A stretch of DNA of 64,000 nt, taken from assembly GCA_026936335.1 (NCBI GenBank), contig JAPMXV010000008.1, positions 1 to 64,000 of the forward strand. The letters run 5' to 3'. The position numbers and the translations under genes were made by a program. Under the pieces are notes generated by a model. It did not search any database. It had not been told where the DNA came from and saw nothing but the letters and a program-made list of their open reading frames with translations. Shown piece after piece: positions 1,097 to 30,820 of the stretch. This DNA is from Mantamonas sphyraenae STR306 (taxonomy: Eukaryota; Protista; CRuMs). The first letter of the stretch is position 1. Each line of letters opens with the position of its first letter.

Positions 1097-4000
1097 ATGG
1101 ACAACGACCACTCGAGCACTCCGAAGCAACAACACACACCCAACACCCACCCAGCGTGCGTTCTGCCTTCCACTCCGTTTTCTGACTGCCCACTTCTCCC
1201 GCTGCCATGCCTCCTCCATGCCTCTGATGCATCCCCGCACTCCTCCCCTGCATCTCCACTTCCCCATCACCCCCGTTGCTGCCTTCTCCGCTCTTCTTCG
1301 ATCCCCTCTCCCCTGTCACTGCCCTCCCCGTCGCCAGTTTCCCGGTCTGCCAATCTCCTCCGTTTTTCCCTCTTTGCTCGTTCCGGCCTCCCTTCACCCC
1401 CGCCTCTACCCTGACGGCGTCCATTCCGCCTTCCGCTCACCATTTCCACCTCGCCCTGCCCCTCCCCGTCCCCCCACAGCTACGCGTACATGGTCCCTCC
1501 CATGGCTGCCCAGCCGTTTCCGAACATGCTGCCCGTTTCAGGCGTACAAAACCCGTACCAGCACCCACAACCACCCATCATCTGGGTCCCTGTCACCACC
1601 CACTCCCAGCAGCACTACGCGTATCCACATCACGGCCATTCTTACTACGCCTACCCTCCTCCGCCGCCTCCTCAGCCGCGACAAACCGCCCAGGTGCACT
1701 TCGCTCAGCCTCCGTCGCACCCTCCGCCTGCTCAACCCACCATCAACCACAACCGCGTCCCCAAACGCATCAGCCCTGCGTTTGTCGGCATCACACGGAC
1801 CACATCCACCACCACATCGTCGTCCTCCTCCCACCAGGCCACACGGCAGACTGGAGACAGCGACGACGACGACGCAGACCAGGACACAGCCACACATGAC
1901 ACCGGCGACGTGGAGGACCTGATGTTCCTGAACTTCGGCCATCGTGAACCACGTTCAATCTCCAGCAACTCAGAGTGGATGACCAGCTCAGGGATGGAGG
2001 CGTACGAAAAAAGATGGAGAGGCAAACGACGCATCCCAGCAGCACGTGGACGGCGAGTTGGAATCTCAGGGCCCACTCACCTTTGCAGACACTGTTGATG
2101 CCATGGATGAGGAGTACATGCCGCAAGACGACAGCGACGATGACACAGACGACATGGAACAGGAGGACTTGGACGAATGGCAACCGAGACGCACAAGTCG
2201 AGGCCACAGACGAGGCAGAGACCACAACAGCCGACGTACTGTTTCACAACAGACGAAAGGCAGCGGACAGCGCAGGCGCAGGGTCACGGCTTGCAGTGGC
2301 ACCGAGACAGGAACGTCGAGCACACGGGCAACGAGGGCCAAGAACGGAGACAAAGGCGCACAGAAGAAAGCAAGCGTGAACATGACGAACAAGTTGCCAG
2401 ATGGTGTTGAGCGCAAAGGGTGGACAATTGGATACTGTGACGAGCGTAGCCGCAGCAACAAGAAGGAGCACACGGCACTGCTGAAGCACATGCACACTCT
2501 GGCCAACGAGCATCCCCTCGACCATATCTCAGACCTCATGACCCAGCAGGCGCGTGTTGTGGTCTGCCATGGCACCCTGTTGACGCTGGTCCGACAGATT
2601 CAGCTCGCTCTGGGCAACATTCCTCTCTCCCAGGGAGATATGGCCTTCTGCCTTACCCTTCTCGGCCGTGACATGGATCAACGCACGTGCAGAACTGCCA
2701 TCAACAACGCTGGTCTGGACATGGGTGTGACAAAGGCTGGGTTGAAGGTGTGCTGGCTGGAGGAGCCACACGACCACGGCGACCCCAACTACGCCCTCCT
2801 CCACCTGCTCATGGCAGAGTTGGACACTCTCGGCAACAGAACCCATCCCACCACCTGGAAGGAGCACGAGAAAACTCAGCTGTGGCTGCAGAAAGCACGA
2901 CGCCCTGCTGACAACGACAGCGACCCACACTGGACACAATGCGACTACGACCACCAACTCACCACCACCATGGTGGACAATTGGCACCCTGAGTCCGTGC
3001 GCAGTGGCTGGGCAACGCACAATCCCAACGACGAGCGTGGCAGCTGCACTGCGCGGGAGTTCCGGACGCTGCTGGCACACATGAAGGCACGTGCAGCCAA
3101 GCACCCTCGCCATCAGCACTCACACGAGCACCAGGCACTGCGTGAACTGGTCAAAAACGGCAGCATGAACTCCCTGGTGCGACACATCATCCTGGCGCTG
3201 GGCAACGTTGGCGTGCCGCCTGTCGACCTGGCCTTCTTTGTCCGCCTCCTCAGGCCACACATCACCTACCTGCAGGTCGTGACTGCCATCAGCGCCACCC
3301 TCACTCGTGGCGTCACCTCCCTTTCCCTCAAGATCACCTGGCTCGACAACCCCAAACCCAGCGACGCCACTCTGCACACCCTCCTCCACACCCTCATCGA
3401 CCGCATCACACCCCACATCACCACCCGTCCCATCACATGCGACGCCGTCAACACCCTCGACATCCCCGAGCTTGTTCTGCACGAGCCTACAGAGGAGGAG
3501 ATGCTGGCTGTGGAGGATGGACTGCCAGATGGCGTTATGCGCAGTGGCTGGACGTCCTGGCGCAAGAGCGAGCGCAGCCACAGCAACAAGAAGGAGCACA
3601 CGGCACTGCTGAACCACATGCACAACCTGGCCAACGAGCATCCCATCGACGACATCCCTGACCTCATGAGCCTGCAGGCGCGTGTTGTGATCTGCCATGG
3701 CACCCTGAACACGCTGGTCCGACAGATTCAGCTCGTTCTGGGCAACATTCCCCTCTCCCAGGGCGACATGGCCTTCTGCCTCACCCTCCTCGGCCGTGAA
3801 GTGGATCAACAGGGGTGCAGAAAATCCATCAGTAACGCTGGTCTGGCCATGGGTGTGACGAAGGCTGGGTCGAAGGTGTGCTGGCTGGAGGAACCACACG
3901 ACCACGGCGACCCCAACTACGCCCTCCTCCACCTGCTGATCACAGAGATGGACACTCTGGGTGCCAGGCCCCATCCCACCACCTGGAAGGAGCACAAGGA

Positions 4001-4667
4001 GACCCAGCTGTGGCTGCAGAAAGCACGACGCCCTGCTGACAACGACAGCGACCCACACTGGACACAATGCGACTACGACCACCAACTCACCACCACCATG
4101 GTGGACAATTGGCTCCCTGAGTCCGTGCGCAGCGGCTGGAACATTGCTAATCACGGCGACGAGCGTAGCAGCTGCACGGCGCGGGAGTTCCAGACGCTGC
4201 TGGCACACATGAAGACACGCGCAGCCAAGCACCCTCGCCATCAGCACACACACGAGCACCAGGCACTGCATGAGCTGATCAACACCGGCAATCTGAACTC
4301 CCTGGTGCGACACATCATCCTGGCGCTGGGCAACATTAGCGTGCCGCCTGTCGACCTGGCCTTCTGTGTCCGCCTCCTCAGGCCACGCCTCACCTACAAG
4401 CAGGTGGTTGGTGCCATCAGCGCCACCCTCACCCGCGGCGTCACCTCCCTCTCCCTCAAGATCGCCTGGCTCGACAACCCCCAACCCAGCGACGCCACAC
4501 TGCACACCCTCCTCCACACCCTCATCGACCGCATCACACCCCACATCACCACCCGTCCCACCACCGTCGATGCCGTCAACGCCTACCCCATCCCCTCGTT
4601 CACCCTGCCCAAGCGCAAAGACCCTTCCTCCTCCTCCTCCTCCTCCAAACGCCAACGCCTTGAATGA
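1097..4667 (+). CDS. Subtelomeric hypothetical nuclear protein: Pro-rich and acidic N-terminus, four tandem ~185-aa winged-helix-like modules (ABAB), C-terminal bipartite NLS-like motif
   Basis: ATG 1097 in gccaccaccATGG context. A phase-2 intron at 1156-1479 (GTGCGT...CACAG) joins in frame to ORF 1490-2098. An apparent +1 shift at the A6 run 2007-2012 leads into the 873-aa ORF. Internal duplication with a 1128-nt period. C-terminus KRKDP-(S)n-KRQRLE. The 2046-4667 part is secure; the 5' exons are inferred. Confidence 0.75.
2390..4590 (+). repeat. Intragenic direct repeat, 2 x 1128 bp (376 aa)
   Basis: agcaacaagaaggagcacacggcactgctgaa occurs at 2454 and 3582, with long near-identical stretches throughout. 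Confidence 0.97.
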
Positions 4668-4805
4668 ACCACCCATTCACATGCAAAGCCTCCAGCCCAC
4701 CCTCCCCTCCCCACCCAACCTTCCCACCTCCGATCAAGTCCATCTTCTTCGCCCCGCCGACAACAACGACAATCGGGTCGTTGCGCCTGCGTGCACAGAC
4801 CTACT

Positions 4806-7800
4806 ATGTCGATGCCTGCCGTCGTCAGTGTCAAAGTCGAGGACCGCTTCTTCGAGGTGTCGACGGTGGAGGGAATGACGGTGGGGCACATTCTGAAATC
4901 TGTGGCCCAAATGTACAAGGTGGAAACGGGCGAAGAGGTGGAATTGGTCAGGTTGGAATGGCATCAGATACTGGCCAACGACACCACAGTTGAGAAGTTG
5001 CAAAGTGCATCTCTCATCCAAGAAGGCGAGCCCTTTGATGCCATCAGTACGTTGTTCGGGCCTCGTTGGCCGAGTTTTCCTGATTGCGGTTTTCCTGATG
5101 ATTGCTGAGTTTCCTGATTGCCGAGTTTTCCTGATTGCTCGAATCCGCCCAGCCTCTCACACGCCATCATAACCCACCCCGAACACAGGAACTAGGCGAG
5201 GGGCGAACAACACACAAGATGGAGGTGGAGGTGAGTGTGTGGTGGTCGTGGGAGGGCGTCACGTCAGACACGTCAGCGGAATGGGCCGAATTGGCGGGAA
5301 GCGTGATCACTCACCCGTCACACCGGTTCTGATGCTCTCCACGCACACAGTGGGGTCTTCAACGGGTTCCACTGAGTCTCAGCAAGGGAAAGGAGCAGGT
5401 AGGTCGTGCGAGGGACCCAGTCATCCCTTGCTACGTAAACGAGCACCTTCCGCCCCTCTCACACGCCATGATGACCCACCCCGAACACAGAAACTGGGCG
5501 AGGGGCGAACAACACAAACGATGGAGAGAGAGATGAGTTGCTGAAAGGTGAGACGATGCTGGCAAGTGCCAAGACGGAGCTGGCGAGTGCTGAGACGAAG
5601 CTGGCGAGTGCTGAGACGAAGCTGGCGAGTGCTGAGACGGAGCTGAACAATGCGTACACTGCCCTGGAGGAGTCTCCAAATGAGCAGAGACTGCAAGGTC
5701 GTGTGAAACGTGCAGAGAATGCATGCACGAGGGCAGAAACGCTGGCGAACGCCGCAGCACAAGAAGTGCTGACCATTTCCGGGATCGTGAATGATCTGAG
5801 GAAGAGGGTACACAAGCACCAACTGGGAAACACTCCCCAGAGCCGCAGTTATCATGCCGCACCAGGTGAGTTCCATTTTCCCTGTGCCCAGCACTATCCC
5901 GGCCCTCTCACACGCCGCCACGACCCACCACGGCCACAGGAACTGAACGAGGAGCGAGCAACGTACAAGGGGATTGGGGAGGTGAGTGTGTGGTGGGTGT
6001 AGGAGGGTGTCACGTCAGCGAATTGGGCGGAATTGGCCCGGAAGCGTGATCACCCACACGCTCACACCGGTTCTGATGCACTCCACGCACACAGAAGGGC
6101 CATCAACACGTTTCACTGAAGGTGGCAATGGGAAACGACCAGGTAGGTCGTGCGTGGGACCCACTCATCCAGCACGCGTCAGCATCCTTTGCTGGTGCAG
6201 TCCCCGGCCCACTCACACGCCACTACCACTCACCACGGCTACAGAAACTGGGCAAGGAGCGAGTAACGCACAAGAGAAATGGGGAGGTGAGTGTGTGGCG
6301 GTCGTGGGAGGGTGTCACGCCAGGCACGTCATCGCAGGAGCGCTCACACCGGCCCTGCGTCTTCTTGCTGATTCCACATTCCACATGAACAGAGCGCACA
6401 GTACCGACCACGTTCGTGGACATGAAACGCATGCTGGAGGAACTGGGAATGGAATTGCGTGATGATTTTGTTCGCCCATGGGCAGGGACTCTCGGACTGC
6501 TGGAATCGCCTACCAAGGAGTGGATTGGGCGGGATGACTACGAGAGGCAGTTCCGCCACTTCCTGAGCATGAACAAGAATGACCTGCGGGAACCGCGGAT
6601 GGGTGTGTTTTCTGCGGTCACTGTGCCTGGATCGGGGAAAACGCGACTTCTGCTTGAGCTTCCGTCGGTGCTTGAGACTGTGCTGAAGAAGTCCGTGCTT
6701 GTGTTCCACGTGTCGTACAACTGCGGAAACAGTGCCACAACCGAAAGCAACCGATCCATAGATGAGCTGGAGACGATTTTTGCCCTGCGAATGCTCATGG
6801 GCTGGACAACCACCAAGGTGCTCACGAGTTCACTTGCGAACAAGGTGCTGCAGCAGTACCGGATCTGCATTGAAGATGTCGTCACCGTGGGTTTGGAGAA
6901 ACTAGGTGTCGAGGACGCGTGGGTGCTGGTGACGATTGACGAGAGCCAGGATTTGCGCAAGACGAAAGTTGGACAGGAAAAGGAACATGCACTGAAGATC
7001 ATCACGGACAAGCTTTCGGGCGTCCACCAAGTATTGAACTACAGGCTTGTTTTTGCAGTCGCTGGCTTGGTGCATGCTGCCAAGCAGCTGGCTGTGAAAT
7101 CAAGCGGAGGAGGGGATTTCCCTTTCCACATGAAGTGGTTCACTGGTGCCATGTTCCAGCAGTTGGCCACAGCTCTCAGCATTGACATCGATTTGGATAA
7201 GTGCAACCGCCTGTCCGTCATGCTTGGTGGGTCTCCGCTGGCAATGATTCGATTTTGCAATCGGGCAAAGGAGAACAACGCCGAGTTCAAGGAAGCTCTG
7301 GAACGTGATCAGCATGATGACCTCCGGAGATTGGCGCAAGATGCCATCAGAAGTCTCGCCAGGAAGTGGCACTCATCCTTCGACGAAGACAACTCAAACA
7401 AACTGCTTTCCGGGGAGCTGTTCAACCTGCCCCTGAATGAGCTGGAGAAAGAGCACCCAGATGCTGAAAACAATGGGCTTGTCACCAAGCGAGGTGGCTG
7501 TTTCAGTGTGGACGGGACCTTGGTGGCGTTGACGACCGACTGGACACGCACTTGGCACATGGACGCTGTTGTGCTCCGTGACGGGCCCGGGTTTGAAGAA
7601 TTTTGTGCCAAGTTTGTGGCCCTCAAGCTGTACCTGGGTCAGTACCGGTGCAATGAGAACGGGACAATGCCGTACTGGAAAATTTGGAATAGCGGGGCAA
7701 GCGTGCCACTCAGAACGGCTGATTTTCAAATCAGAACGAATCTGGGTGGCGATTACCTCATCCCGGTGGCGATGAAGCACCGATTCCCTCGGGGCAGCGA

Positions 7801-8581
7801 TTATGACACGAAGCAAATCGAGGTCGACAAGATGGACGCCGAGGTCGACGATATTGACATGAAAGCCAGTCTGAAAAAGATGAAAGAAGGTGAAACAAGG
7901 TATGTCAAAGATGCGTTCAAATCTACACAGCCGCAAGTCAATCGTGTGTACATCAACGGAAGGGGTGCGCCCTTTGCAGATGTTTTCACGTTTTTTCAAG
8001 TTGCTGGAGACCAGGACCATCTGCTGATGGAGTGTATCCAGTGCAAGCACTACGCACAGAGCACTTCATTGAATGAGCTCCACTGTTGGGATGAGTTTCT
8101 CAAGGTGGACTCGGCCAGGGAGCAGATTGCGCAGCTTGGACGTCGCATGGGGGCAACGCAGATCAGCGTTGTTCTGGGCATTGTGACGACAACCGGGAAA
8201 CACCAAGCACTCTCGTTTGGAGAGAGGCTGAAAATGGCGATGATGGATGCTGTGATGGCTCTGAACACAGAACCCCGACACAAACCACTCGTGGCCAACA
8301 TGGGGATGAAGCATCGGGATCTGCAGAAAGAGTTGGCGGAGTGGCAGCACACGGTGGTGGTGCAGGGGGGAGTGACAGTCAAGATGTGCGGTCTGTTTGT
8401 GGTCGGGTACGAGCAGTTGAGGGGATTCTTTGGTGACAATGCGTTGGGACCTCTGTCCAACATCGAGTTTCCGGTGACAGGGAACGATGAGCATTCCGAT
8501 GTTGGGTCATCTGCCAGTTTCCGGGGGGCACCCTCGCGTGAAGAATATGATGAGGAGGTGGTGGTGGTGGAGGTTGAATGA
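4806..8581 (+). CDS. Crinkler/CR-type effector: Ubl header, micro-exon linker, coiled coil, P-loop NTPase and REase-fold nuclease. Inferred exons 4806-5046, 5189-5230, 5351-5398, 5491-5865, 5940-5981, 6095-6142, 6245-6286, 6393-8581
   Basis: Ubl-like pattern VSVKVEDRFFEV...MTVGHILKSVA...ILANDTTV. Walker A VPGSGKT and Walker B VLVTIDESQ. REase-like FEEF...NGRGAPFADVF...IQCKHY. All seven introns are GT-AG and phase 1, and the spliced product is one open frame. Confidence 0.8.
5072..5138. repeat. Minisatellite, ~16-bp unit (GAGTTTTCCTGATTGC), 4 copies, in intron 1 of the CR effector
   Basis: Direct reading: tttcctgat recurs four times. Confidence 0.85.
5150..6352 (+). repeat. ~305-bp exon/intron module repeated in tandem (2 full and 2 partial copies)
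   Basis: ctcacacgcc..c..gacccacc...cag at 5156, 5458, 5906 and 6212. gaagcgtgatcac...cacaccggttctgatgc.ctccacgcacacag at ~5298 and ~6041. caggtaggtcgtgcg at 5396 and 6140. Confidence 0.92.
5560..5645 (+). repeat. 21-nt coding tandem repeat, 4 copies, encoding heptads LASA(E/K)T(K/E)
   Basis: ctggcgagtgctgagacgaag repeated, with translation LASAKTE-LASAETK-LASAETK-LASAETE. Confidence 0.95.
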
Positions 8582-8622
8582 AATGGGGACAATTTGTTCA
8601 GCTGATGCAAGGGTGCTGCCCT

Positions 8623-9080
8623 TGTGCAGCCATGCACCCTCAACATCAGCACACACACACGAGCACGATGCACTGCGAAAGCTGATCAACAACGGTAACC
8701 TGCACTCCCTGGTGCGCCACATCATCCTGGCGCTGGGCAACGTTGGCGTGCCGCCTGTCGACCTGGCGTTCTTTGCCCGCCTCCTCAGACAACACCTCAC
8801 CTACAAGCAGGTGCAAGGTACCATCAAGAACACCCTCACCCGCGGCGTCACCTCCCTCTCCCTCAAGATCGCCTGGCTCGACAACCCCAAACCCAGCGAC
8901 GCCACACTGCACACCCTCCTCCACACCCTCATCGACCGCATCACACCCCACATCACCACCCGCCCCACCACCTCCGCACTCGTCAACGCCTACCCCATCC
9001 CCTCCTTCACCCTCCCCAAGCGCAAAGACCCTTCCTCCTCCTCCTCCTCCTCCTCCAAACGCCAACGCCTCGAATGAACC
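8623..9080 (+). pseudogene. 5'-truncated extra copy of the C-terminal B module and NLS of the 1097-4667 gene
   Basis: Near-identical to ~4220-4670, including the stop context gaatgaacc. It has no own N-terminus, and a +2 (CA) expansion at ~8650-8660 breaks frame with the upstream homologous codons. Confidence 0.85.
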
Positions 9081-28500: not shown

Positions 28501-30820
28501 GCGGCGTGCATGGCTCATCCATGGTGATGCACAGGCTGGCCGACGCCTTTCCTGCACGTGTGTCCATCGACGCCGGACCGCATTGTGTCAGCGACTGCAG
28601 GCGTGCGCCGGTGTCGACCGTGCGCAGCTTCAGCTTGCCGTTGGGGGAGTGCAGCTGCACAAACGGCACGCCCCACACGGACACGTGCTTCTCCGCAGTG
28701 TGCATCGACGACGCAGACAGGTCCAGCACGTTGTTGTCCCCTGCAAGCGGCACGCCTCCTGCAAACCAGCCTCCCACCGACGTGGTGGCCGTAAACGTGC
28801 GTGCGTGCACAACCACGCCGTGGAATCCCTGGTAGGGACGCCCCAGGTCCGCCTTGACCAGGGTTTGCTGCGGCGGGTTGCCCGAAGCAAACAGGCCTGT
28901 CGCCTTGACGTCCTCTGCGCTACGTCCAATCACGTACGCGATCGAGTCGACGTCCAGCAGACCGCCGCATCCCTTGACGAGAGCGACGTTGGCCAGGCTC
29001 GTCTCGGCCATGGACGCCACAAACACCACGTCTTTCGACTTTGGTGCAAAGTTGACCCACACGGTAAAGTCCACCGCGGCAGTGGAGCGGAATCCGAACG
29101 CCGACGACAGTTTGGGCAACAGTGTGTTGTCCGTTTGTGACGCCGTGAACCGGAAGGTGAGTCCTGCCAGCGCTGTCAGTGTGCGGTTCATAGCAGACAG
29201 CTCGGTGGTGCCCGGATGGTACACCACCTCCACGCCCGTGTGCGTGTCCATGGCCATGCCTGTGGGCTTGGTGAAGCCCAGCATGGCGTCTGCCCCAGCT
29301 TGCGGCATTGCCTCGCGAGCCACAAGATCGGCAGCAACTGCCTTTTTGTTGCACGTCCTGTCGAGCGCATCGAAAGGCCTGCAGGCGTCATCAGCAGCAC
29401 AAACGGGAAACGTGATGCCTGGGAGTGCACCTGAGCCACACCTCGCAAGTCGAACGACGCGCCTGTGCCCGTGGGCGGCACGTTGACCACCACGTCCAGG
29501 TGAACAACATCAAGATGTGGTGCTCCAAATTCCGGCTTGTCTGTTGGCACATACCGTCGGAGAGAAAGCCCACCAATGTGAGCACGGGACTCCCATTTCA
29601 CACTCACTCACTCCAGATTCTCAGCAATAAAACTTACCAGCTCGTGCAGCGAGGCAAACACTTGAAGTTTGCGGACAACGGGCCGCAGCACGCAATGTGA
29701 GCTTAGCCTCGGGAAGCGTTTTTTGCGCAGCACCCACAGCACTGAGGGTGGCGGAACCGCTGCTCGAGGTCAGCTGGGCCGTGTCTTGGTGAACGGACAG
29801 ACGAACACCCTGCGCAAGCGTGATGCGAAGCTGAGCGGTTTCGATGGTGTGCGCAGAGTTCAGTTCGACCGTGCAGGCCTTGCCCTGCTGACAGGTGAGG
29901 TCTGCCGGCAGGCCATGCACCTTCATGCCACCGGCAAGGCGGACATCAAGTGCCTCCACGGTACCGTGGCCGTCCAAACGCATGGACAAGTCCACACGGG
30001 TGCTTTTGGAAGTCGAGAGCACGGCTTCCACTTTCTTGTTCAGCATGCGCGGGCCTCCCAGGGTTTGCAGCAGAGCGACTCCGCCTCCTGCGGAGGATGC
30101 CTTGAAGGACACCACACCCGAAGGAGCCAGATGCATGTTTATGCGCACCTCCTGGCCAGCCAGCGTCGCTACGCCGTCGATATGCACCGCATTGCCGCTC
30201 GGCTGGACTTTGTCGCGCGCAACACGTTCAACAAGCAAACGTTGTTGCGTGCGCATTGCCCAGCTTGGCATGCCATGCTTATGCAACCATGCCACAGGCA
30301 TGTTCCACGACCCTTTCAGTACATCCAGGGCATCCAGGGCGTGCTGCAGCACCGCGTCTGTGCGTGGGCGGTGTGGACGTGTCAGCGGAATCCTGGAGAC
30401 AACACTGCTCCAATATTCAAGTCCCCGAGGAGCCACACTTTTCCATGTGCACAGACCCTGCAGGACGACACAGACATGCAGATCGCATGGAACACTCCCA
30501 TGCACACATATACAGACACATACCACCACTCATGGGGCTCAAATGCGCCCGTGGCACAATTGAGCCATGAGAGGGGCTGTGGCACGTTTTTCGCAACAAA
30601 AAATCAAACGACTCCGCCACGTACGCTGGGACTTGAGGGGCGCAGCCACATCAAAGTCATGCAGGATGGACGCACTATTGTCGCCATCCACAGAAACAGA
30701 TACTGCAGAGCCAAACGTGCTCAGCAGCGAGAATATAGTCACAATTGTGATTACGTCGAAAATTCGCCCGCTCGCGTTCTTCCGCGCGCGGACAAGGTCA
30801 ACTCGTGTGTTCTCCCTCAT
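10519..30820 (-). CDS. Giant (~6,700 aa) putative secreted protein: hydrophobic leader, beta-rich region, amphipathic coiled coil, Cys-rich repeats, fascin-like beta-trefoil, about 24 LamG/ConA-like repeats and 2 TSP1 domains. Interrupted by several frameshifts and 1-2 introns
   Basis: Same-strand overlapping ORFs (30539-30820, 30382-30585, 29621-30529, 29188-29607, 26426-29323, 11139-26447, 10519-11313) have matching codon style and join by 1-nt shifts. TSP1 motifs W..C...CGGG.Q.R. LamG motifs TVALWF, HHLAVV, YVNG/FVDG. The 5' 1.5 kb is least certain. Confidence 0.75.
19511..19830 (-). other. Two thrombospondin type-1 (spondin-like) domains within the giant protein
   Basis: CRASHWKPVGECNKACGGGVQRMVRK...CNKKPCPVDCKMGEWATQKCSRSCGKGELISTRRI...C. 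Confidence 0.92.

Follow-up and report, generated by a model that had tools for sequence, protein, structure and literature searches.

Tandem Exon Duplication and Related Systems

The textbook cases of tandem exon duplication are the 54-bp exons of collagen and the PEVK exons of titin, and the exon shuffling of phase 1-1 modules in metazoan extracellular proteins is known as Patthy's rule. A locus that recalls both processes lies at the left end of contig C8 of Mantamonas sphyraenae, a free-living flagellate and bacterivore whose 25-Mb genome is assembled in 78 contigs with TTAGGG repeats at the ends (PMC10492846). In the stretch analysed here, the first 64,000 nucleotides of this contig (hereafter the window), positions 4806-8581 of the plus strand read as a single gene of eight exons, in which all seven introns are in phase 1. 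A ubiquitin-like (Ubl) header exon is followed by micro-exons of 42 and 48 nt, a 375-nt coiled-coil exon, further micro-exons of 42, 48 and 42 nt, and a 2.2-kb exon of P-loop NTPase/nuclease-like character. As in the textbook cases, exons and flanking introns are placed head to tail with length and phase kept, and the outcome would be a longer repetitive or linker segment. Unlike them, the array is found in a deep-branching protist (CRuMs), comprises a three-exon A-B-A block, and has one copy that appears to have been fused to a coiled coil through donor loss. The array is a tidy case of this known process and involves no new mechanism.

The closest analogue is the group of micro-exon genes (MEGs) of Schistosoma, in which up to 75% of a small secreted protein is encoded by micro-exons of 3n length whose removal leaves the frame unchanged, introns are long, and skipping was demonstrated from transcripts (PMC4015677, citing DeMarco et al. 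2010). SmVAL6 is described as the combination of a micro-exon array and a member of another gene family (PMC4015677). The locus on C8 shares with MEGs the consecutive short symmetric exons of 3n length (42, 48, 42, 48 and 42 nt, phase 1-1) and, like them, would belong to gene families tied to interactions between organisms. Unlike the MEGs, its five micro-exons account for 222 of ~3030 coding nt, that is, ~7% of a multi-domain protein of ~1000 aa, the introns measure only 74-142 nt, and no hydrophobic signal peptide is evident at the N-terminus.

A second system of comparison is that of the CR (Crinkler-RHS-type) effectors, whose commonest architecture, in the redefinition of Zhang et al. (2016), combines a Ubl-like header, a P-loop NTPase and a restriction-endonuclease-like domain (PMC5289972). 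Crinkler-like genes were also reported in free-living eukaryotes, with a different toxin domain (PMC12957317).

Gene Structure at the Left End of Contig C8

The eight exons are held together by their frame. Exon 1 ends in phase 1, each of the six internal exons has a length divisible by three, and the last open reading frame (ORF) is in frame only upon phase-1 entry at 6393. Moreover, all six internal exons are preceded by ACAG and are free of stop codons in the phase-1 frame, and the donors that follow them are either GTGAGT (A-type exons and the 375-nt exon) or GTAGGT (B-type exons). For the analyses reported below, the exons were searched, translated and folded singly. The 375-nt exon is open in a single plus-strand frame, in which the log-likelihood ratio (LLR) of codon usage is +0.31, and its coiled coil contains 21-nt (heptad) repeats at 5549-5645. 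A donor-like AAG/GTGAGA of 7.9 bits is located inside this exon at 5548, the use of which would give a 57-nt exon of phase 1-1; no downstream acceptor matching this site was found.

A preliminary description of this stretch had listed three exons of 42 nt, two of 48 nt and one of 375 nt, and all of their coordinates and lengths check out on re-reading, as do the acceptors, the GTGAGT/GTAGGT donors, the 1-1 phases, the 3n lengths and the stop-free frame, each of which was seen in its place. It had also taken the region for a duplicated exon/intron linker array within one multi-domain gene, on which splice-site quality, frame logic and the structure of distant paralogues agree, and it had proposed that the 375-nt exon begins as a 42-nt exon copy without donor, which is borne out by the match of this segment (A2) to micro-exon A1 at 35 of 42 positions and by its mutated donor, formerly GTGAGT and now ATGAGT. 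The contrast that it drew with intron-poor neighbours agrees with the characterization of M. sphyraenae genes as 'mostly mono-exonic' (PMC10492846). An RNA-seq run (SRR21818794) and a transcriptome assembly (TSA GKKZ00000000) of the species are named in the same paper.

The boundaries of the cassette were revealed by comparison with other chromosome ends, which match the upstream subtelomeric family gene up to ~4678-4721 and then again from 8624. A direct repeat of 300 bp, 91% identical (4245-4544 and 8652-8951), flanks the insert. Since the insert at 4722-8623 encloses exactly one gene model, with margins of 84 nt ahead of the ATG and 42 nt past the stop codon, its ends fit a single unit. A strong acceptor-like site, GCCTGCGTGCACAG (10.3 bits, 4785-4798), stops 8 nt short of the ATG at 4806 and is a candidate mark of an intron in the 5′ untranslated region.

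We regard it as probable, though by no means certain, that 4806-8581 constitutes one spliced gene, whose linker array of micro-exons would have grown by tandem duplication of exons and introns. The sequence anatomy, the quality of the splice signals, the pattern of conservation and the gene structure of the paralogues are shown directly; the splicing-in of the exons, their mostly constitutive inclusion and the role of the protein are inferred. The five tiny, frame-neutral, duplicated micro-exons very probably lengthen a flexible linker between the domains encoded by this subtelomeric gene.

Table 1. Features of the cassette at 4722-8623 of the window, with splice-site scores in bits.
Feature	Positions	Strand	Characteristics
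Cassette, one gene model	4722-8623	+	~3.9 kb; at only three chromosome ends (C8, C11, C20)
Exon 1, 80-aa ubiquitin-like (predicted beta-grasp) header	4806-5046	+	ATG at 4806; 241 nt; ends in phase 1; GTACGT donor
Intron 1	5047-5188	+	142 nt; GTACGT 8.2; CTCAC branch-like motif at -30; ACAG 9.0
Micro-exon A1	5189-5230	+	42 nt; phase 1-1; TRRGANNTQDGGG
Intron 2	5231-5350	+	120 nt; GTGAGT 10.8; CACAG 6.6
Micro-exon B1	5351-5398	+	48 nt; phase 1-1; GSSTGSTESQQGKGA
Intron 3	5399-5490	+	92 nt; GTAGGT 9.3; CACAG 9.3
Exon 4	5491-5865	+	375 nt; phase 1-1; first 42 nt are A-type copy A2, then coiled coil
Intron 4	5866-5939	+	74 nt; donor GTGAGTTCC 12.4; acceptor 6.7
Micro-exon A3	5940-5981	+	42 nt; phase 1-1; TERGASNVQGDWG
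Intron 5	5982-6094	+	113 nt; GTGAGT 10.8; CACAG 8.5
Micro-exon B2	6095-6142	+	48 nt; phase 1-1; GPSTRFTEGGNGKRP
Intron 6	6143-6244	+	102 nt; GTAGGT 9.3; TACAG 6.6
Micro-exon A4	6245-6286	+	42 nt; phase 1-1; TGQGASNAQEKWG
Intron 7	6287-6392	+	106 nt; GTGAGT 10.8; AACAG 9.8
Last exon, P-loop NTPase/nuclease-like	6393-8581	+	Entered in phase 1; stop codon 8579-8581
Walker A, GSGKTR	6629-6646	+	In last exon
Walker B, DE	6938-6943	+	In last exon
Nuclease-like D...ExxQxK block	7979-8047	+	In last exon

Splice Signals and Reference Introns

Position weight matrices were built from a reference of 30 introns of the same genome, taken from 18 Ras-family loci on the basis of frame and profile continuity, after a Pfam Ras search had returned many small-GTPase genes split exon by exon. 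These introns display GT[AG]NGT donors, a CTGAC/CTCAC branch-like motif that usually precedes the acceptor by 20-50 nt, and an A/C-rich tail leading to ACAG. The candidate donors of the C8 gene scored 8.2-12.4 bits (none below the 98th percentile of the GT sites of the window), compared with a leave-one-out median of 10.3 bits in the reference, and the candidate acceptors scored 6.6-9.8 bits (95th-99.5th percentile of all AG in the window), compared with a reference median of 8.0 bits. Each acceptor has its nearest CTSAY branch-like motif at an upstream distance of 13-30 nt (reference median, ~35 nt), and the candidate introns measure 74-142 nt, compared with 74-483 nt in the reference. Between 5047 and 6392, eight donor-like sites of at least 8 bits were counted, against ~1.2 expected from the window-wide rate. 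In addition, CTCTCACACGCC is conserved before every A exon and matches the pattern of the reference branch motif, which points to a branch-point zone.

Exons as short as those proposed here are within the reach of the M. sphyraenae spliceosome, since Ras-family genes (loci on C3, C7 and C69) contain genuine micro-exons of 15, 22, 27 and 52 nt that code for the conserved DTAGQ region. Those of 15 and 22 nt encode the switch-II motif (DTAGQ / IWDIAGH), and Ras-family micro-exons of all four sizes are likely to be missed by gene finders.

Two further observations concern introns of the window. A 17-nt tandem repeat of ~4 copies, detected with TRF, occupies 5072-5139 within intron 1 and carries a branch-point-like CTGAT in three of its copies. 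A candidate intron of 97 nt (GTAAGT...CTCAC...AACAG) was noticed at 29541-29637 of the minus strand, in a giant minus-strand gene.

Divergence within the Micro-Exon Array

The repeat search returned four A-type copies (5153, 5455, 5904 and 6209) and two B-type copies (5318 and 6062), in the order A1-B1-A2 / A3-B2-A4, A2 being the opening 42 nt of the 375-nt exon. The copies agree fully in length and phase, and the sequences are 62-83% identical for A, 65-74% for B and 75-90% for the flanking introns, bearing in mind that copies of a repeated array are not independent observations. When the first unit was compared with the second, the exons were found to be 71% identical (92/130) and the introns 85% (201/236; Fisher p = 0.0015), so that conservation shifts at the predicted boundaries, a pattern that a functionless repeat would not give. 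The 11-nt windows around the donors are identical among A1, A3 and A4 and between B1 and B2.

A conservation of introns above that of exons (85% versus 71%) might also be expected if the introns hosted small structured RNAs, as in genes of the snoRNA-host type. However, the Rfam search of the introns gave only a chance-level match to mir-1249 (E = 0.32), the predicted folding of the seven introns was in no case better than that of shuffled versions (z = -0.45 to -1.36), and the conservation falls on the zones of donor, branch point and acceptor. The hosting of RNAs, to which we give scarcely any credence, was rejected on the Rfam and folding results. A few short complementarities between introns and exons, such as that of 5051-5065 with 5197-5211, were no stronger than chance and were dropped.

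The NTPase Exon Family

The array on C8 can be placed within a wider family. A profile search, with a profile built from ORFs of Mantamonas plastica and two weak in-genome matches, found at least 13 copies of the NTPase exon in the M. sphyraenae genome, most of them ~5-20 kb from a contig end (family loci: C30:9135, C6:371150, C17:10480, C17:297033, C12:246548, C72:241183, C69:5324, C34:728649 and C71:5462). In 10 distant paralogues, the NTPase module occurs without the Ubl header, and the same number have a layout of coiled-coil exon, 36-nt micro-exon and NTPase exon. Eight copies of the type found on C30, together with that on C6, are organized as a coiled-coil exon (phase 1), an intron, a 36-nt micro-exon, a second intron and the NTPase exon with phase-1 entry, where a GTGAGT donor follows the coiled coil, the first intron measures 65-73 nt and the second 68-72 nt, and the frame is kept only by the double splice. 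The 9-mer at the donor after the coiled coil in the C30-type paralogues, GTGAGTTCC, is the same as that of intron 4 in the C8 gene.

The micro-exon of the C30-type copies is always 36 nt long and would yield LWEAAAxISPH. Among seven of these copies, 10 of 107 splice-proximal intron sites are variable versus 12 of 36 micro-exon sites (p = 0.0022), and the middle of the introns varies at ~83% of sites, with indels. Four variable sites of the micro-exon are, in our reading of the variants, synonymous only in the phase-1 frame. The conservation of length, splice signals and layout indicates that a symmetric micro-exon between coiled coil and NTPase is an old, selected feature of the family, and the A/B array of the Ubl-headed subfamily would be an expansion of this theme. 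Some members are damaged: the frame of the last exon is broken on C71 and C34, and an 8-nt deletion removed the micro-exon acceptor on C69.

These paralogues bear on the possibility that the C8 locus holds two transcription units, a small Ubl/coiled-coil gene and an independent NTPase gene starting from the ATG at 6422, which would leave the acceptor at 6392 idle. This ATG is in frame and stands 69 codons ahead of the P-loop, and a Ubl header is missing from the C30-type and C6 paralogues and was not recognizable in the Trinity ORFs of the M. plastica homologue either. However, all ten header-less paralogues have an intron and a micro-exon before the NTPase, which is in frame with the coiled coil only via two phase-1 splices, and the NTPase exon on C6 has no Met from the opening of its frame to the P-loop, so that it cannot start a protein and must be spliced. 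In addition, Met 6422 aligns with a Leu in the M. plastica sequence P0001, whose ORF extends upstream, the acceptor at 6392 is the best of the seven, and without this splice the upstream exons would meet a stop codon only by reading through the intron. A division into two units is distinctly improbable on these grounds.

In the proposed course of events for the one-gene reading, the ancestral layout of the family would have consisted of a coiled-coil exon, a phase-1 intron, one symmetric micro-exon, a phase-1 intron and the NTPase exon. Tandem copying of a unit of micro-exons and short introns would then have given rise to A1-B1-A2 / A3-B2-A4 in the subfamily with the Ubl header, and a change of G to A in the donor of A2 would have fused this copy to the coiled-coil exon. 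Each duplication would have lengthened a Gly/Ser/Thr/Asn-rich, presumably disordered linker, the frame being kept because every piece is a multiple of three flanked by phase-1 introns. Selection would keep the splice signals, and the exon bodies would drift or diversify.

Other observations were made on the homologue of M. plastica and on the C6 locus. The Trinity isoforms i9, i6 and i2 (P0001, P0004 and P0005) of the M. plastica homologue differ at the C-terminus, and its 77-aa Cys/Phe-rich N-terminal extension resembles a translated retained intron, suggesting further exons upstream; a search for contigs encoding P0001 returned no record. Upstream of the family member on C6, at C6:367569-369542, a 657-aa ORF displays His-Gly and Asp-Ser-Cys motifs with caspase-like spacing, and it had no match in a Pfam search.

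Three Near-Identical Copies and the Case against Translation

The ~305-bp unit was found by genome search only on C8, on C11 (4.2-8.0 kb) and on C20 (244-248 kb), in each case 4-8 kb from the contig end; a genome-wide introner was ruled out, the unit being present at three loci only. The three genes share the header (95-96% aa identity), the C-terminal exon (93-98%) and a nearly identical array, and the A-B-A array is a private expansion of these genes. All eight exons are intact on C8 and C20, the coiled-coil exon of C20 having one 21-nt unit fewer. Indels among the copies amount to 1, 11, 1 and 6 nt in introns, corresponding in C11 to introns 1, 3, 5 and 7, and the 11-nt insertion in intron 3 indicates that this stretch is non-coding. 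In exons, indels are multiples of three except in the coiled-coil exon of C11.

Several observations weigh against a translated gene of eight exons. The coiled-coil exon of C11 (C11 ~4880-5270) measures 388 nt and contains two frame-breaking indels, so that the eight-exon reading is untranslatable in this copy. No damage is seen in its header, its five micro-exons, any of its splice sites or its NTPase exon; the state of this copy may reflect skipping of the broken exon, a pseudogene of recent origin or translation from an internal start. The dN/dS among C8, C11 and C20 is ~0.7-1.0. Furthermore, the A/B micro-exons have a mean codon-usage LLR of -0.22 in the frame of the model versus +0.36 in frame 0, with values of +0.22 to +0.31 for the three long exons in the model frame, and the changes from copy to copy are nearly all non-synonymous, without third-position bias. 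The A/B peptides show no sign of purifying selection, and we read the A/B exon bodies as a young or fast-evolving linker; the same data are the main internal evidence against their translation. Openness of the frame is weak evidence here, because frame 0 of the micro-exons is likewise free of stop codons and the 375-nt region is open in all three minus frames. Finally, the transcript-derived homologues of M. plastica have no recognizable Ubl header, and no M. sphyraenae model was found in the protein databases.

Part of these observations would suit a decaying subtelomeric pseudogene, in which the array is functionless and its tidy splice sites and frames are left over from recent duplication. 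Besides the dN/dS values and the broken frame of C11, the damage seen on C71, C34 and C69 and the subtelomeric location are in keeping with such decay. In opposition to this, C8 and C20 are intact across eight exons, and the 2.2-kb last exon is open in the three copies despite 74 substitutions and three in-frame indels between C8 and C11. The divergence between units, which is non-uniform and tracks the exon/intron boundaries, is likewise not a pattern that neutral decay would give, and we hold the pseudogene to be improbable.

The same observations may also be accommodated if the A/B micro-exons are mostly skipped or behave as cassette exons, in which case the main mRNA would join header, coiled coil and NTPase, or header and NTPase directly, and the duplicated units would be optional or pseudo-exons in decay. 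This alternative, which includes the splice-level diversity proposed in the preliminary description, is unlikely. The arithmetic of frame-neutral skipping put forward there is correct, since all pieces are of phase 1-1 and 3n length and the frame survives whichever of them are left out. Neither codon usage nor synonymous sites support the A/B exons, the intact NTPase exon of C11 beside a broken coiled-coil exon fits a skippable exon, and the introns of 304-527 nt that skipping would create are within or just beyond the reference range. However, both splice sites of each micro-exon are strong and diverge less between duplicates than the exon bodies do, introns as short as these should each be recognized singly according to intron-definition splicing, and the homologous 36-nt micro-exon of the sister subfamily displays coding constraint and a fixed length. 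In this way, by intron-definition reasoning, mostly constitutive inclusion of the micro-exons in one spliced mRNA would be the simpler expectation, given introns of 74-142 nt and strong sites.

Protein Identity and Sharing of Modules

The header exon was modelled by AlphaFold2 (AF2) from its single sequence with a pLDDT of 73, and the top Foldseek matches in the PDB were nearly all ubiquitin-like, though weak (E 0.04-0.3; TM 0.5-0.67). Its nearest neighbours by atlas features were YukD, TmoB and Rad60-SLD, at 0.90-0.92. A beta-grasp fold is predicted for the header with moderate confidence.

The C-terminal module is a P-loop NTPase, whose Walker A (GSGKTR) and Walker B (DE) show no variation among six family members. 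The residues invariant in the family are G79, G81, K82, T83, R84, D182, E183, D529, E546, Q549 and K551, and the block formed by D529...E546-x-x-Q549-x-K551 falls on a predicted beta-beta pair; the AF2 model of this nuclease-like region, with a pLDDT of 35, was too poor for a fold search. A paralogue and the M. plastica homologue gave weak matches to AAA_16, AAA_22 and NPHP3_N. The Pfam search of the header and C-terminal exon of the C8 gene gave nothing significant, Crinkler PF20147 not being reached at E <= 0.1, a PDB sequence search that included the nuclease-like region found no match, and a word-index search of protein databases with the NTPase exon and a four-sequence header alignment returned nothing. 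With phmmer, run against 1.84 billion representatives, the only relatives of the C-terminal exon were ORFs from the M. plastica transcriptome (23-30% identity) and one low-complexity match. The atlas scores of the last exon were 0.99 to eukaryotic clusters labelled 'Archaeal ATPase' or hypothetical and 0.95 to Crinkler-family clusters, which is a language-model lead only.

In its order of a predicted N-terminal Ubl-like header, a P-loop NTPase and a candidate restriction-endonuclease-like block, the C8 gene resembles the CR effectors (PMC5289972), and like them it belongs to a multi-copy, fast-evolving family in which headers and C-termini are variously combined. Unlike them, it has no PF20147 match, the 80-aa header and the linker translations contain neither the LxLFLAK motif nor the HVLVxxP with which the DWL domain of oomycete CRNs ends, its sequence relatives are in Mantamonas only, and its host is a free-living bacterivore. 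Whereas the oomycete Crinklers (CRNs) are thought to recombine at HVLVxxP, the module boundaries here are phase-1 introns. The label of CR effector used in the preliminary description is plausible. In our opinion, the likeliest identity of the protein is that of a nuclease regulated by NTP and of Crinkler-like conflict type.

The header also occurs outside this family. A paralogue of 39% aa identity on C49 (C49:464500-470500, ~1611 to 5042 there) has a header exon that ends at the same residue, in phase 1 and with the same GTACGT donor, so that the header is common to two architectures across a phase-1 intron. Downstream, the C49 gene encodes a CHAT-like segment (HYSGHG), a STAND NTPase of NB-ARC/NACHT type, an EF-hand-like Cbl_N2 and an SH2 domain, an architecture that resembles an immune-type protein. 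After its first intron, two candidate acceptors compete (1987 and 1995).

The preliminary description had viewed the repeat unit as a hotspot where headers and toxin domains could be swapped. This view was not upheld, since the genome search places the ~305-bp unit at three loci only, with the same header and the same C-terminus. The modular character of header and C-terminus does stand at the level of the family, where modules are shared across phase-1 boundaries, as revealed by C49 and by the 10 header-less paralogues, and it fails as a process acting through the repeat unit. The header exon followed by a phase-1 intron before two unrelated C-termini, in the C8 gene and in that of C49, recalls the shuffling of phase 1-1 exons; unlike the metazoan cases, only two contexts are found and the modules are not extracellular. 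A bolder proposal is that the phase-1 introns are real shuffling joints, at which header and micro-exons were moved, duplicated or skipped to yield varied subtelomeric conflict proteins of NTPase/STAND type and isoforms of different linker length, the C11 copy being functional by skipping. We consider this extended proposal rather doubtful.

Implications for Mantamonas and the Gene Family

Mantamonas, whose genes are mostly intron-less, is a member of the CRuMs, which branch near the base of Amorphea. The family described here, with its conserved micro-exons, phase-1 boundaries and recent tandem duplication of exons and introns, would be a clean natural example, outside animals, of linker growth by exon duplication. 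The presence of the Ubl header on two C-terminal architectures gives a hint of exon shuffling, of which few cases are documented in protists. Because exons of 36-48 nt are easily missed, automatic annotation will probably split or truncate the genes of this family. In M. sphyraenae, the present analysis delimits a subtelomeric family that comprises at least 13 NTPase/nuclease-like genes.

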